From Guillardia theta CCMP2712 (lineage: Eukaryota; Protista; Cryptophyta), in assembly GCF_000315625.1 (NCBI RefSeq), contig NW_005434606.1:123154-187153 (forward strand): DNA of 64,000 bases. Direction: 5' to 3'. A program made the translations under genes and the position numbers. Positions 2,987-11,759 of the stretch are shown here, piece by piece; position 1 is the first letter of the stretch, and each line of letters starts with the position of its first letter. The notes below the pieces were generated by a model that was given only the letters and a program-made list of their open reading frames with translations, was not told the DNA's origin and ran no database searches.

Positions 2987-5382
2987 TCAAACTTCGGCCT
3001 GAGCCCTCTCTTTGTCCTCTACTTCCTTCCGCTCTTTCTCCCAACCGCCAGTGATCGTCTTGAGCCACAGAGGAGGAACCGCGAGCAATTTCTGAGGAAG
3101 CGATCAGGGAGGCAAGAGGGGTAGGGGAGAGGAAGGGTTGGAGGGGAGGGGTCATACCTGTTCTCGGGAAAGGAAAGCTCGCTTGTTGAAGTTGTCGTAG
3201 TCGTTCTTCTCCAACTCATCCAGAATTCCCTTGTAGAGCTCGGCAGCCACTGCGACCGGCAGCTGTGGCAAGGCGTCAGATCCGCTGCTGCTGCTGCTTC
3301 TCCTCCACTACCACCACCGCCACCACCTCTTTCTCCTGTCCCTCCTTCTCCTTCGTCCTCCATCCTCTCCCTTCACCTCTGCGCTCTGCCCCTCAACAGT
3401 AGCTCCCTCACGTGCTCACTTCTTGCCATCTTCTCTCCCTCTTTCCTCCCCATCAACCAGATGTCTCCTCCTCCTCCTCCTCCTCCTCCTCCTCCCCCTC
3501 CCTCCTTCCTCGTCCTCCCTCAGTTCCCCTCCTCTCAACCCACCTGAGCCCCCGGAGCCAACAGAGCAATCCCCTCCTCCGCCTCCTTGTAGTACTGTCT
3601 CGCCCTCGCGATCTCGAACTTCATCAGGTTTCTGTAATTCTCGTCCACCGCTCCACCGTTCCGGCTCCTCTCGAAGATGCTCTCCTGCCATGTTGTCAGC
3701 GGACCGGACCTCCTCTCCCCACTCCTTCCTCCCTCCGTCCTCTGTCCTCTTTCTCCCTCCTCCCTCCGTCCTCTGTCCTCTTTCTCCCTCCTCCCTCCGT
3801 CCTCTGTCCTCTTTCTCCCTCCCCCGTCTCAGCCTTCTTCCTCCCACTCTCGCTCCTTCCACTGCCCATCCTTCGTTCCTGCCTCCCCTCCCCTCTCTCT
3901 CCTCTCACCTCCGTCACTCCGAATCTCTTCAGGTCCTCGATCGGCAAGTAGATCCTCCCTCTGTCCCGCGCATCCTCCCCGACATCCCTCAGGATGTTGG
4001 TGATCTGCAGCGCGATCCCTAGCGCCACAGCAGGCGTGCGAGCGTCGTCGACTCCCACTCCCTTGGCCGTTCCCATGACAGGCAGCGTCATCAGCCCAAC
4101 AGTAGCAGCGACGCGGTAGCAGTAGAGGTACAGCTCTTCCCACGTCTCGTACCGCCTGTCGTCGATGTCCATTTGCATGCCCCGGATCATGTCTCGGTAA
4201 GGCTCGATGTCGCTCCCCGGGTACTGCTGCAGCATGTCCTTGAACGCCAAGTCGAACGAGTCAAGACCCGCCTGCCCTCCCCTGTCGCTCCACATGCTGT
4301 CCAGCCGCGCCATCCACTCCTCCAGCAGCTTCCTCTGCGTCTCCGGGTTCGGATCAGCCTTTGGTCCATCCACAATCTCGTCGACTCGCCGGCACCAGGC
4401 GTAGATCGCCCACGTGGCCTTGGCCTGCAGCGGCTCCATGGCGAGAGTCGCGAGGAAGAACGTCTTGGCGTACTCGCTCGTTAGTTTCTTGCACTCCTCG
4501 TACGCCGAGTCCAGCTGAGACTCTCGGGCCTGTCGAGCTGGGGTCAGCACGAAAGGAGGTAGAATCGATGCAACAAGGAGGATGAAGCACAAGATAGTAA
4601 GGAGGAGGAACAGGAGGGAATGAGGGAGAGAGGAGAGAGAGAGGAAGAAGACCAGAGGGAGGGATGGAGAAAGAGAGGGAGGATGACGAGGAGAGCAAGG
4701 AGGAAGGTGGAGGGAGGGGGGGAGGGTATGAGGGGAGGATTACCTCCTGCAGGAGTTTGTCAGCATTCTTCGAGGATCCGCTGACGGCGCTCAGGAACTC
4801 ATAGCAGTCGATTTGCGAGTCCTTGTCCGAGTCCATAGCATCTACCAGCGAGCTGATCATGCCGTCCGTTACCCCCTGCGGGAACTCGTTCTTCAAGCAG
4901 CGATTCAAGTCGTCGATGCTCAGCTTCCCGTCCTCATCCGTGTCGTACTTGACGAAGAGCTTCAGCGCGTTGAACCGGTACTCCTTGCTCTCGTCCAACT
5001 TGATCCGCAGCACGTCGATCGCCTCCGTGGGCTGACAGCCGTTCCCCCGCTGCATAATCCTGTTTGCGTACCTGAACTGATACTCGATAATCCTCGGCAG
5101 GTTGATGAGCAGCTTGCCGAAGCCGTCCAGCGTGCCTAGAGCAGCAACGGCGACAAGAGGAGCCGTCAGAGCACCGAGAACGCTGATAGCCATATGAGGA
5201 GAGGTCGATTTCTTCGCCCGGCAGGCGGGTCGAGGTTGGGGGAAGGCAAGAGACGTAGAGTGAGGCAGTTGATGCTTGAGAGCTGCAGCGCTAGCAGATC
5301 GCAAGGAGAGAGTGTTGCCGACGAAGGCATGACAGAGAGGAATCAGAGCGAGCAAGGACAAGGCCAAACAAGACGATCTCAT
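2987..5382 (-). CDS. PSY: Plastid-targeted phytoene synthase with an N-terminal EF-hand pair (~536 aa). Exons 5382-4744, 4529-3909, 3684-3544, 3262-3158, 3091-2987.
   Basis: All four introns are GT-AG and phase 0, with CTGAC/CTGAT branch points. PSY motifs: [73 protein letters not shown]-terminus has a signal peptide ending CHA-FV and a Ser/Ala/Arg-rich transit peptide. EF loops [12 protein letters not shown] and [12 protein letters not shown]. Confidence 0.93.
3725..3825. repeat. ~32-bp tandem repeat x3 in PSY intron 2
   Basis: cctccctccgtcctctgtcctctttctccct repeated. Confidence 0.85.
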
Positions 5383-6304
5383 GGTAGAGGTTGCAGACGG
5401 GTCGAGAAAACTTGACTCTTAGATTTGCAGCATGTGATCAGAATTCAACTGGCTGACGGACGTCCTGCTGGTACACAAGCACACGAAACTTCATGCCCTG
5501 CTGACCTGTTCAACAACAATCAAGGAGGAAAACCCTACTCGAAAACAAGATACAGATGAACGAAAACTCATGGACTGTTCAGAGAGGAGAGGAGAGTCGA
5601 TGAGCGGCGACGACACGGGGAGGTAGAGGACAAAGGGTTTGATGTAGAATACAAGTCTTGTGAGAGTCAGATGTTGTTGAGAGGAAGAAGGAGACGCGAG
5701 AGGGAAGCGTGAGGGAGCAGCAAAATTTGCAGAGGAAAGAAGCGCGGAGCAGGGATGGAGCTCAAGGAGGCAGGAGAGCAGGAGATGTGGTGAGATGATG
5801 GGACCGAGGGTGAGAGAGAGAGAGGTAGCAGCAAGGAAGAGATGATGAGGAGGAGTGGAAGGAATGGGGGAAGGGAGGAGGGGGAGGAGGGTCGGAACGG
5901 GATCTCACCGCCATGCTGGAGGCCGCTCGCTTTGCAAGTCTTGTAGGAAGATCGCCAATTCAACAGTTCTTGTTTTTGTTTTAAGATATCAGTACTGAAA
6001 CCTCCCTCTCAACAAACTTGTTGGCTCTTTTCACTTGAACATAGGGGTAGGGTACTATAAAATTGACCGGTGCTAAGTATGGGAACATAACCGGTACTCA
6101 AGAGTCGTTCCACGCTTTCCTCGACGTGTTCTAAAAGACTCATTTCAAGATTGCAGTCGGTACTTCAATCTTCCTGAGTAAATTTGAAATAATCTGAATT
6201 ATACACATATTACATTTCAAGTGGCGTAGTGAAAGTAGTCTTTGACTATAGGCCATCTATGAATGGAGCATGTTTCATAGTGTGTGAATCCTTGAAGATT
6301 GACT

Positions 6305-8119: not shown

Positions 8120-11080
8120 TTAAGATACGATGTTGTCCCTCACCGTTGCGTCGCAGCCCGGCTCTACCAGCAGCTGGCTCTGCCCTCTGTTGTACGAGAG
8201 ACGGTTGTCGCTGACCATCCCTCGCCCGGCCTGCGACACGAAGACACCGGCGCCCTTGTTCTCCCTCACCACGTTGCCTCTCACGATCGGGTTCGCTCTC
8301 CGTAGGATTGCAATGCCGTTGCCCTGGTGGCCGGAGATCGTGTTCCTCTCGATGATCCCAGCAGACTCGTCCGTTATCAGCACCCCGTGCTGCAGGCAGT
8401 CCTTCACCAGATTGTTCTTCACCACAGGCGCTGACCCCATTGTGATACAGATCCCTGACCCAGCACCAGCCCCGTGCCCAGCCCTTATCACCGTGTTGGA
8501 CTCGATGTACCCTTTGCCGTTGTGCGAGACCTTGATCCCATCTGAGTGCGACTCGAGGATCTGGTTCTTCGTCACCCGCGGCTCAGCCTCGCTCTCGATG
8601 AGCAGCCCGATCCCAGCGTTGGCCCGAATCGTGTTCCCGTCTATCAGGCCTCGCCCAGCAAAGCACACAGAGATCCCGTCCCCCTCGCTCTCCCGGATCG
8701 TGTTGTTCCTCACCACAGGATTCGCTCGGTTCATGATGTACAGCCCAACCGACTGGTTGCAGTAAATGTCGTTCTCCTCGATCGTTCCCAGCCCTTCTTC
8801 CACGCACGTCACCCCGCAGCTTCCGCTGTGGTGGATTTGGTTCCCCCGGATCAGCGGGTCTGCGCTGTTAGCCACATAGACGTTGGGGTGAGCGTTGCAG
8901 TAGATGTCGTTGTCTTCTATTGTCCCCTTTCCTCCCTTGAGCACAGAGATCCCGCAGCTGTTCCCGTCGTGGATGCTGTTTTCCCTCACCACAGGGTCTG
9001 CACCGTCCTCGATCGATATCCCCACCTGCCCATTGTGGCTGATGTCATTCTTCTGGATCTGTATGCCTAAGCCCCCGTAGATTTTGATCCCGTCTCCCTT
9101 GCCATGCCTGATCCTGCATCTCCTCACAATCGTATCTACACTGTCGTCCATTCCAACACCGGGGAACGCGTTTTCACAGATGTCACACCCATCAATCAAA
9201 GCTCCTCCCTTGCCAAACAGGAAGAATCCGTTTTGACCACACCTGTTCACCCTGCACCTGTAAGAAGACAGCCTGGCTCCATCCCTGATCACTATCCCCA
9301 CCCCGCACACGCTTGTCACATCGCACTCCTCGAGGATCAGTGACCCTCCTGCCACATCGATGCAGCGCGTGCAGTCCCTTCCCTCCTGTGAGATTTGCGA
9401 GAGATGGATGAGCGAAAGTCCCTTGACGAGAGCCCCTGATGCATTGCAGACCACAACAGGCCTCACCGTCACTCCTTGAATCTCAACTCGGCAGTAGCCC
9501 GACGCTGTTTGACTCGCCTGCAGCGTGATTGCCTTGTCAATGAACAGCTCCTCCTGATACTTGCCCTCCATGATCTCGATGGTCATCCCATCACTGGCTG
9601 CCCTGAGTGCTTGTGAGATGCTTCCAAACTGATCTCTGCCTGGTCTCTTCGACACATAAAGTGTGTCTGACGTGCGAATGTTCGCAAACCGGTTCGAAAT
9701 GCTGGAGTCACTGCTGTCGTCCGAGCGTCTAGGAAGGCGAGTAGCCGGTGACATGCTGTGCTCGTAGTTTGCCCCTGCCCCCATCGGTTCTGCTGTCAAC
9801 CTCTGAGCATCCGGTTGTTCCGTAGGACTTCCCCTCTGCCCTGTCAAGCGACGAGGAGCTGGAGGGGGCGAGGATCCAGGGCCTTTGACGAGCACAGGCT
9901 CAGCCTCCGCTGCGGGCGATGGCTTCAAGAATTTGTATTCGACAATCTCAGCCGCCGATGGCCTCTTCTTTGGATCAGGTTGCAGCATCGAAGAAAGAAG
10001 CGAATGAATGTCTGGCCCATACAAGTCCATCACCGGCTGTATGACCTTGACAATCGCCTTCGGGTCGACTTGAACTTGAGTCGCCAAGGACCCTGGTCTC
10101 TCATGCATGAACTTCAGTGTTGCCATGTCACACACAACACATCCTAGCCCCCAGATGTCCGTCTTGAAATCATAGCCGTGGCCCATCTGAACTTCCGGGC
10201 TCTCGTACCCTGGGGTGCCGCACTGGGTCATCGCGAGCTTGCTTTGAGTGACCCCATGTCTTGCAAGACCAAAGTCAGCTATCTTCAGATCTCCTTCTGC
10301 ATCTAGCAACACGTTCATAGGCTTGACGTCACGATGGATGACCTTCTGAGAGTGCAGATACTTGAGGGCTTCACAAAGTTGCAAGATCCACATTTTCACC
10401 CTCCGCACGCTGATCGGCTTCTTCTTGCTTCTCTGACGACACAGCATTTGATAAAGATCGCCCCCGGAACAGAACTCCATAACAATCCCGACATAATTAC
10501 CCTTAGTGAGGTCTGAACCAAGAAATACTTCGTTGTAAGATACAACGTGCCTGTGTTTCAGCCGAGAGAGCATCATCGCCTCTTCAATCGCCTTGTTAGT
10601 TTCTTGAAGCCCAGAACAATAAATCTGCTTCAACACTGTCTGCTGTCCAGTCCTTTTATCCGTCGCCAAGTAGGTCGTGCCCTGCCCGCCGGTTCCAAGA
10701 ACCTTGCCAATCTCAAAGTAGTCGCTCTTGCCTTCATCAGTGGAAGCATGATCCATACCATCGATCGTCGAGGCTCCGAAGGGTGCCAAAGTAGATGCAG
10801 TCCTTGGGATCTGCGAGTTCACAGGTTTCGATGAATTCTTGGATATCACAGGATCACTGCCAGCTGAGACGTACAAAAGGTCGTCGTGAATGACCAAGTC
10901 CAAATGATCGATCTCAGCGCCATGCTTGTTGAAGAGGCGGCAAGTGGAGGGCCTCGGGAAACCAAGCTTGACTCCAATAAGTTCCTTGGTCTCTTGCAGC
11001 GAGGACCCGCATAGCGCTGTTACTCTCGCACCGTCTGGCTCCAAGCTCTGCACAGTGATTCTCTTTTGTGAAGAAGACAT
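8120..11080 (-). CDS. Uninterrupted Ser/Thr kinase (NEK-like) with an N-terminal KHA/DCX-like domain and a C-terminal right-handed parallel beta-helix
   Basis: Kinase motifs GTGGQG, VLK, HRDVKPMN, DFG, GTPGYESPE. N-terminal RLFNKHGAEIDHLDLVIHDDLLYVSAG. About 15 repeats of ~23 aa like GTIEDNDIYCNAHPNVYV. ATG at 11080; a preceding TAG|G may be an acceptor for an upstream exon. Confidence 0.88.
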   Translation of the reverse strand: MSSSQKRITVQSLEPDGARVTALCGSSLQETKELIGVKLGFPRPSTCRLFNKHGAEIDHLDLVIHDDLLYVSAGSDPVISKNSSKPVNSQIPRTASTLAPFGASTIDGMDHASTDEGKSDYFEIGKVLGTGGQGTTYLATDKRTGQQTVLKQIYCSGLQETNKAIEEAMMLSRLKHRHVVSYNEVFLGSDLTKGNYVGIVMEFCSGGDLYQMLCRQRSKKKPISVRRVKMWILQLCEALKYLHSQKVIHRDVKPMNVLLDAEGDLKIADFGLARHGVTQSKLAMTQCGTPGYESPEVQMGHGYDFKTDIWGLGCVVCDMATLKFMHERPGSLATQVQVDPKAIVKVIQPVMDLYGPDIHSLLSSMLQPDPKKRPSAAEIVEYKFLKPSPAAEAEPVLVKGPGSSPPPAPRRLTGQRGSPTEQPDAQRLTAEPMGAGANYEHSMSPATRLPRRSDDSSDSSISNRFANIRTSDTLYVSKRPGRDQFGSISQALRAASDGMTIEIMEGKYQEELFIDKAITLQASQTASGYCRVEIQGVTVRPVVVCNASGALVKGLSLIHLSQISQEGRDCTRCIDVAGGSLILEECDVTSVCGVGIVIRDGARLSSYRCRVNRCGQNGFFLFGKGGALIDGCDICENAFPGVGMDDSVDTIVRRCRIRHGKGDGIKIYGGLGIQIQKNDISHNGQVGISIEDGADPVVRENSIHDGNSCGISVLKGGKGTIEDNDIYCNAHPNVYVANSADPLIRGNQIHHSGSCGVTCVEEGLGTIEENDIYCNQSVGLYIMNRANPVVRNNTIRESEGDGISVCFAGRGLIDGNTIRANAGIGLLIESEAEPRVTKNQILESHSDGIKVSHNGKGYIESNTVIRAGHGAGAGSGICITMGSAPVVKNNLVKDCLQHGVLITDESAGIIERNTISGHQGNGIAILRRANPIVRGNVVRENKGAGVFVSQAGRGMVSDNRLSYNRGQSQLLVEPGCDATVRDNIVS

Positions 11081-11759
11081 TGCCACCTAGTCAAGAGCTG
11101 GTTTTGCAAGCAAGGTTCTTCTATCTTTGGTGGAAAATGCACAGCCAACCTTTCAAAAGAATCGAACTTCAACCTCCTACTAGACGCTGACGTCACACCT
11201 TACTATGATGCAAAACCCGCTGAAGTATCATGATATTTATCCCACTCTTCCAACAGAGATTCCACCTTTCACAGCAACAATCCGAATTCGGCCTCTCTAC
11301 CTTGCTTCAATCTACGGGTTCCGATGCAGAACTTTGATCTTTTCCCACTTCTCTTGTACGCACCTTGAAGGATGAATAGCAATGCTCGCTCACTTGACTG
11401 TTCACTGTCTCGCGTTCCCTAACAAGAAGCTGTATCCACAGACTGCTCTCCTTCTTCCCAAACAAGTGTTATGTGCAGCCTATCCGGTTTTAGTTCGAAT
11501 AGGCTTCTTCTAGACAGTTCAGCAAGGCTCCGGAACCCTGTGATGTCTTGTAATCACTCGTACTGCACTTCCGCAACACTTTTCCCCAGTGTCCGAGCGG
11601 TCAGATTTCCTCTTGAAGAGCTCAATCACCTCTGAAATTCACGTTGAAAAAACTCTTTTCTTGTCTTTTGCAGATATCTTCATCCTCTGCTCCATCACGC
11701 TTCTCCGCATCCTACCGCTCGTGCCACTTCCGGTACCTCCATTCCTTCCGCCATTGTTG

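Follow-up and report, generated by a model that had tools for sequence, protein, structure and literature searches.

An EF-hand phytoene synthase in the cryptophyte Guillardia theta, a candidate for calcium tuning of carotenoid synthesis

Phytoene synthase (PSY) is the rate-limiting entry to carotenoid synthesis and a main target for engineering the pathway. Could plastid Ca2+ act on this enzyme directly? The question is raised by a gene, here called PSY1, on the minus strand of a 64,000-nucleotide (nt) stretch of Guillardia theta CCMP2712 DNA (contig NW_005434606.1; the whole stretch is referred to as the window). A preliminary description of the window had noted, at 5382-2987, an EF-hand pair fused to a PSY domain, and had proposed that carotenoid flux may be under direct Ca2+ control. 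We find that the fusion is one gene with relatives across cryptophytes. If the proposal is true, a built-in metal-binding lobe would let plastid Ca2+ signals control pigment production directly.

One gene encodes the EF-hand pair and the synthase

PSY1 has five coding exons: 5382-4744 (213 codons, aa 1-213, with the presequence, a hydrophobic segment and the EF-hand pair), 4529-3909 (aa 214-420), 3684-3544 (aa 421-467), 3262-3158 (aa 468-502) and 3091-2987 (aa 503-536 and the stop codon). All are in phase 0, with lengths divisible by three, GT donors and CAG acceptors. Intron 1 (4743-4530, 214 nt, GT..CTGAC..CAG) lies between the EF-hand exon and the PSY exons, and the remaining introns are at 3908-3685, 3543-3263 and 3157-3092. 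A complete 536-aa open reading frame (ORF) from a G. theta transcriptome (P0008, UniRef100_A0A7S4PF03) is the exact translation of the five exons, in order, and matches the window protein letter for letter. This record is named only 15-cis-phytoene synthase, and no study of it was found in the searchable literature.

Two studies, X2 (2014) and X3 (2019), yielded assembled contigs that each cover 5506 to 2995 in a single record lacking the introns, intron 1 among them. The run type of X2 and X3 was only guessed to be RNA, but the precise loss of GT-AG introns means that these records are cDNA. A transcript contig, L015, shows the same splice joints plus an intron in the 5' untranslated region (UTR); because L015 and P0008 may share their source data with X2, they were not scored as independent. 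In the raw RNA run X19 one read fell on the gene, and run X1 did not cover it. The contigs thus provide continuous RNA across the 4744/4529 junction, and they bear out the phase-0 splice of exon 1 onto PSY that the preliminary description had read from the DNA.

Two records might raise the suspicion that exon 1 belongs to a gene of its own, apart from the PSY exons, or that mainly a short isoform with EF-hands only or PSY only is made. NCBI model XP_005827293 (290 aa, partial) begins within exon 2, leaving out the entire N-terminal EF module, and a Hanusia phi protein (P0001) terminates at the exon-1 boundary. Yet X2, X3 and L015 run unbroken across the junction and rule out a two-gene or mis-spliced arrangement. 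Fused full-length transcripts occur in other species, and exon 2 encodes no targeting peptide of its own, the observation from which a single gene had originally been argued. This alternative is largely refuted and we consider it very improbable. The EF-hand exon and the PSY exons form one gene, with a single spliced mRNA that encodes a single protein of 536 aa, a structure that corrects the NCBI model. The Hanusia record, which ends exactly at the boundary, may be due to a break in the assembly or a retained intron, or may represent a true isoform with EF-hands only.

The spliced gene model was searched exon by exon, and full-length analyses were run on the database proteins P0004 and P0008; one homology search used the open frame 5382-4357 as query and was scored over exon 1 only. 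Exon 2 matched the SQS_PSY profile with an E-value of 2.8e-54, and PSY1 scored 254 bits against this family (PF00494; cut-off 26), covering profile positions 3-262 of 263. The PSY region (aa 214-515) is complete, as had been claimed, with both Asp-rich motifs intact (aa 260-267, 4391-4368; aa 391-399, 3998-3972). Both lid motifs are intact as well (aa 233-237, 4472-4458; aa 495-498, in exon 4), the former being YAKTF, an active-site lid motif (PMC5377061). Among NCBIfam models the best match was cyanobacterial CrtB NF045686 (335 bits, E 3e-100); a eukaryotic protein is expected to fall short of the 550-bit equivalog cut-off for cyanobacteria, and this one does. HpnD scored 199 bits and squalene synthase 27. 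By profile scores and trees, cyanobacterial and algal PSYs are closer to PSY1 than squalene synthase or HpnC/D are. As judged from its sequence, PSY1 is the main plastid PSY of G. theta, predicted to convert a pair of geranylgeranyl diphosphate (GGPP) molecules to 15-cis-phytoene.

A conserved N-terminal module in cryptophytes

Exon 1 contains the signal peptide, transit peptide, hydrophobic stretch and EF loops previously ascribed to it. The signal peptide (aa 1-19, 5382-5326) appears, by inspection, to be of ASAFAP type, with cleavage at CHA/F placing Phe at +1; orthologs have F or W at the matching position. The transit peptide (aa 20-63, 44 aa, 5325-5194) has no Asp or Glu, six Lys/Arg and ten Ser/Thr. 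In these respects the bipartite presequence fits the ASAFAP rule, a stromal import signal in red secondary plastids (PMC4329603), and we infer that the precursor is imported into the plastid stroma. Ortholog homology starts sharply at Met64, so the mature N-terminus is probably at or near this residue. Guillardia and Hanusia are identical at 31 of 62 presequence positions and at 145 of 150 positions of the mature N-terminal module. The latter begins with a conserved hydrophobic segment (aa 64-84, 5193-5131; Kyte-Doolittle 2.18), a putative membrane anchor or hairpin, followed by a conserved basic amphipathic helix (aa 85-112, 5130-5047; hydrophobic moment up to 0.73).

The EF-hand pair spans aa 133-201, and exon 1 matched the Pfam model EF-hand_7 (PF13499) with 36.9 bits (cut-off 30, E 4.6e-9). 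The two 12-residue loops lie at exactly the positions first proposed, 4944-4909 and 4833-4798. Positions 1, 3 and 5 are D/D/D in both G. theta loops and D/N in orthologs. Loop 1 (EF1) also has Gly6 and Asp12, and loop 2 (EF2) has Asp9, Glu12 and Ser6 in place of Gly; Gly6 and Glu12 occur together in neither, and only EF1 matches the PROSITE-style EF pattern. In 12 aligned PSY1 rows, EF1 position 3 is D/N and position 5 is D without exception, and Gly6 is present in 11; position 12 is Glu in nine rows, Gln in two and Asp in one. Positions 2, 7, 10 and 11, meanwhile, carry four or five residue types. For EF2, position 1 is D and positions 3 and 5 are D/N in all eight rows of the group PSY1-A (clade A), and position 12 is Glu in 11 of the 12 other rows of the alignment. 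Every clade A row has at least one loop with Glu12. EF1 position 1 and EF2 positions 8, 9 and 12 belonged to the patterns used to locate the loops and are not counted as evidence; the rows are related rather than independent, and the conservation pattern covers several genera. Ligands that are kept while non-ligand loop positions drift are the pattern given by selection for metal binding, a reading these alignments support, though the pattern is silent on which metal is bound and on switching. Together with the Pfam match, this supports the EF-hand pair of the preliminary description as real and maintained by selection. A match to XopAW was rejected: it covers the EF lobe only and, at 27 bits, stays under the cut-off of 120.

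An AlphaFold model of PSY1 (mean predicted local distance difference test, pLDDT, 79.8; predicted template modeling score, pTM, 0.72) shows both hands as helix-loop-helix units, and short strands at loop positions 7-9 pair with each other. A single helix (aa 207-233) leads from the EF lobe into helix A, encoded in exon 2, and stops at the Tyr of YAKTF. The catalytic part fits CrtM-like structures with a root-mean-square deviation of about 1.7 Å. The sequences and shapes nearest to the EF lobe are calmodulin, CDPK and troponin lobes, with weak fold E-values of only about 0.01-0.08.

The same build (presequence, hydrophobic segment, EF-hand pair, PSY) was found at full length in Rhodomonas sp. 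CCMP768 and Hemiselmis andersenii. There were partial finds in Hanusia phi (the exon-1 part), Proteomonas sulcata (partial) and Baffinella frigidus (upstream exons with EF2), and the family is also present in many environmental transcripts. Relatives were collected by three word-based searches and one profile search, and full-length fused transcripts from other species comprise L008-L014, P0015 and P0253. Three groups can be distinguished: PSY1-A, with both loops; PSY1-B (clade B), in which EF1 is kept and EF2 deleted; and PSY2, with loops partly or fully decayed. A PSY2-type build occurs in Teleaulax amphioxeia. G. theta itself has an intron-split PSY2 paralog on contig C69 (G000:C69 about 75470-77470, plus strand; L005:4475-6473), which has the same N-terminal module at 25% identity to PSY1, decayed loops and no Pfam EF match. 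Its catalytic domain is identical to that of Hanusia PSY2 at 219 of 231 positions.

In trees of the PSY domain the family forms one clade (Shimodaira-Hasegawa-like approximate likelihood ratio test, SH-aLRT, 99 with 22 rows; 100/100 with 17 rows), which sits within a group of other eukaryote PSYs and is separate from cyanobacteria. Among 80 metagenome and 24 cyanobacterial genome PSY loci, only two had an EF-hand, and both matched the family module. EF-hands were absent from about 29 unlabelled PSYs of eukaryote type, whose N-extensions reach up to 260 aa. The Atlas diatom PSY cluster lists SQS_PSY as its sole domain, and Atlas feature searches gave only generic EF clusters or nothing. When an N-module profile was searched against 1.84 billion representatives, the top 150 matches were family members and generic multi-EF proteins only, although such a search could miss weaker or differently built EF-PSY fusions; four new matches with a PSY part all belonged to the cryptophyte family. 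Typical plant and cyanobacterial PSYs had been said to lack EF-hands, and this holds for those sampled here, as it does for the PSYs of other algae in the sample. Within this sample, the sequences indicate that the EF-hand PSY is real, conserved and cryptophyte-specific. Since the family is one clade and the other sampled PSYs have no EF-hand, the module appears to have been gained once in cryptophytes, before PSY1-A, PSY1-B and PSY2 split.

What the EF-hand lobe may do

That PSY1 is a Ca2+-tuned PSY is the reading we prefer, at odds that seem to us about even. In the mechanism we envisage, the hydrophobic segment and amphipathic helix (aa 64-112) would hold PSY1 at the plastid membrane, and the EF lobe would bind Ca2+ upon a rise in stromal Ca2+. 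The resulting change would be relayed along the single helix aa 207-233 to the YAKTF lid, or would alter membrane docking. Under high light or oxidative stress we would expect activation rather than inhibition, though by a modest margin. Activation would let algae without a xanthophyll cycle make more carotenoid (alloxanthin) de novo, and PSY2, with its decayed loops, would supply a Ca2+-independent baseline. The fullest form of the proposal, a stromal-Ca2+ switch in which the lobe is wired to the lid and high light or reactive oxygen species (ROS) raise carotenoid synthesis within minutes, offsetting the missing xanthophyll cycle, is more tentative, and on balance we lean against it.

In favour of this mechanism we count the single spliced gene, the conserved loop ligands and mature module, the one clade of EF-hand PSYs and the modelled lobe that runs on into helix A, together with several published observations. 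Plant PSY is unstable and needs membrane association, galactolipid and Mn2+ (PMC9039723); membrane attachment of PSY1 through aa 64-112 would be consistent with the membrane and galactolipid need. In land plants, stromal Ca2+ signals are induced by dark, with resting levels of 100-150 nM (PMC7081724). In diatoms and Chlamydomonas, stromal Ca2+ rises under high light and H2O2 (PMC11663583). The preliminary description had invoked stromal Ca2+ changes on light-dark transitions, which is apt for land plants but not for the red-lineage plastid of diatoms. For PSY1, then, a stromal Ca2+ signal under high light or ROS is a more likely trigger than darkness or light-dark shifts. Cryptophytes have no xanthophyll cycle, and their main response to high light is a change in alloxanthin content (PMC13103710), so fast control at PSY would fit.

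Other observations weigh against Ca2+ control. EF2 has Gly6 in only two of the eight PSY1-A rows, G. theta EF2 being without it, and the EF2 loop is deleted in clade B. EF1 of G. theta and Hanusia has Asp12, which leans toward Mg2+, and two orthologs have Gln12; in EF loops Asp at position 12 shifts selectivity toward Mg2+, and Gly6 favours high affinity (PMC5983762). Since the lobe is retained in PSY2 orthologs whose loops are dead in part or in full, the fold can persist without Ca2+, and the plastid-type PSY2 of G. theta could bypass any Ca2+ control. In the AlphaFold model aa 64-118 are of low confidence (pLDDT under 50 for aa 64-84), a second run on the N-terminal half still did not exceed pLDDT 50 for aa 64-118, and no contacts could be read. 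Finally, no measurement of stromal Ca2+ dynamics in any cryptophyte was found in the literature searched.

The residues at EF1 position 12 and EF2 position 6 also favour a structural or Mg2+/Mn2+-loaded site, which would be always metal-filled or track light-driven stromal Mg2+, and would stabilise the enzyme instead of reading out Ca2+ transients. The instability and Mn2+ dependence of plant PSY point the same way, as does the fact that conserved ligands speak of selection for metal binding and not for switching. On the other hand, EF1 has the Ca2+-favouring Glu12 in nine of 12 PSY1 rows and clade A keeps Glu12 in EF2, and we regard such a site as rather unlikely. The best-conserved stretch measured is not a loop at all: the entering helix of EF1 (aa 133-146, 4986-4945) is conserved at 78%, compared with 72% for the PSY core, 65% for the hydrophobic segment, and 43% and 35% for the whole loops. 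This counts against Ca2+ control, and points to a fixed interface at the helix. The lobe might then serve mainly as a scaffold whose metal binding is dispensable and decaying. In that case selection would have acted on the hydrophobic anchor, on the amphipathic helix and on the helix that enters EF1, for docking to the membrane, for dimerisation or for binding a partner, GGPP synthase for example. G. theta PSY2, which retains the module without a Pfam EF match, and the loss of EF2 in clade B agree with a scaffold. But PSY1 ligand positions are invariant or D/N-only next to loop positions that are free, and neutral decay would not yield ligand-only conservation over several cryptophyte genera. 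We consider a mere scaffold improbable.

How does the proposed Ca2+-tuned enzyme compare with known systems? Plant CRSH is a Ca2+-activated RelA/SpoT homolog with its own EF-hands and no separate calmodulin. PSY1 resembles CRSH and the CDPK sensor-responders as an enzyme with built-in EF-hands, a role that for PSY1 is predicted from sequence; these proteins differ in having an unrelated catalytic domain and C-terminal EF-hands, and homology is limited to the generic EF lobe. We know of no other Ca2+-gated carotenogenic enzyme. With plant and cyanobacterial PSY/CrtB (PF00494, NF045686), PSY1 has in common the catalytic domain with both Asp-rich and both lid motifs, and it differs by the 150-aa mature N-terminal module of hydrophobic segment, amphipathic helix and EF pair. 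A parallel in setting is diatom KEA3, which serves photoprotection in a secondary plastid of the red lineage and has acquired an EF pair that plant homologs do not have; the pair is required for nonphotochemical quenching (NPQ) and photoprotection (PMC11663583). KEA3 is a transporter rather than an enzyme, however, its EF pair is C-terminal, and its function has been tested, whereas PSY1 is known from sequence.

Neither domain of PSY1 is unusual and the sequence is already public, but the combination of the two is new to the literature searched. In line with the preliminary description, we found no account of an EF-hand PSY in work on PSY and EF-hands, cryptophytes, alloxanthin or calmodulin, with subscription journals outside coverage. 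Plant PSY is regulated through OR, Clp, GGPPS and UTR control, and a review of this regulation, whose text does not contain the word calcium, expects more fast post-translational regulators (PMC9039723). High-light stromal Ca2+ signals have now been measured in algae, and few targets are known (PMC11663583). If true, Ca2+ tuning of PSY1 would connect pigment flux with Ca2+ signalling in a group of phytoplankton that is abundant and has no xanthophyll cycle, and would offer a switchable PSY. Nature supplies the controls: PSY1 with two loops (Guillardia, Rhodomonas, Hemiselmis), PSY1 with a single loop (clade B) and, within the same cell, PSY2 with dead loops.

Upstream reading frames, related genes and neighbours

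L015 maps the 3' end of a non-coding 5'-UTR exon to 5926-5909 (the start of this exon is unmapped), followed by a 403-nt intron (5908-5506, GT..CAG) and the remaining 5' UTR (5505-5383); the X2 and X3 contigs end at 5506. The spliced 5' UTR (141 nt in L015) contains three upstream ORFs (uORFs; 5914-5419, minus strand). The first, of six codons, arises across the UTR intron, with its ATG in the upstream exon and its end in the downstream one; the others have 18 codons (5494-5438) and four codons (5433-5419). The orthologous transcripts L008 and L014 have 5' UTRs without an upstream ATG. Translational control by these uORFs, in Guillardia only, is possible.

For PSY2, NCBI model XP_005827152 likewise omits the module, and the C69 assembly is one base short relative to transcript proteins P0028 and P0085 near L005:4786-4789, probably an assembly error. 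A third gene, on contig C28 (L002:1267-2427), is a bacterial-type crtB with a hydrophobic N-terminus and a best match to NF045921 (Rhodobacter-type); no EF-hand lies upstream of it on that contig. A squalene synthase-like gene (L004, G000:C14) is the fourth PF00494 match in the genome. Nine diatom-like PSYs (L025, L028, L030, L035, L037, L040, L047, L049 and L060) have their own conserved N-extension of ~100 aa, unrelated to the cryptophyte module.

Beside the 3' end of PSY1, well-covered RNA contigs at 2833-2903 (depth 391 in X2) stop at about 2903. A neighbouring transcript, left of an assembly gap (N 846-1792), probably ends here. On the other side, at 8120-11086 on the minus strand, the window contains an intronless 988-aa ORF with a weak KHA/ubiquitin-like N-terminus, a Ser/Thr kinase domain and a long right-handed beta-helix.
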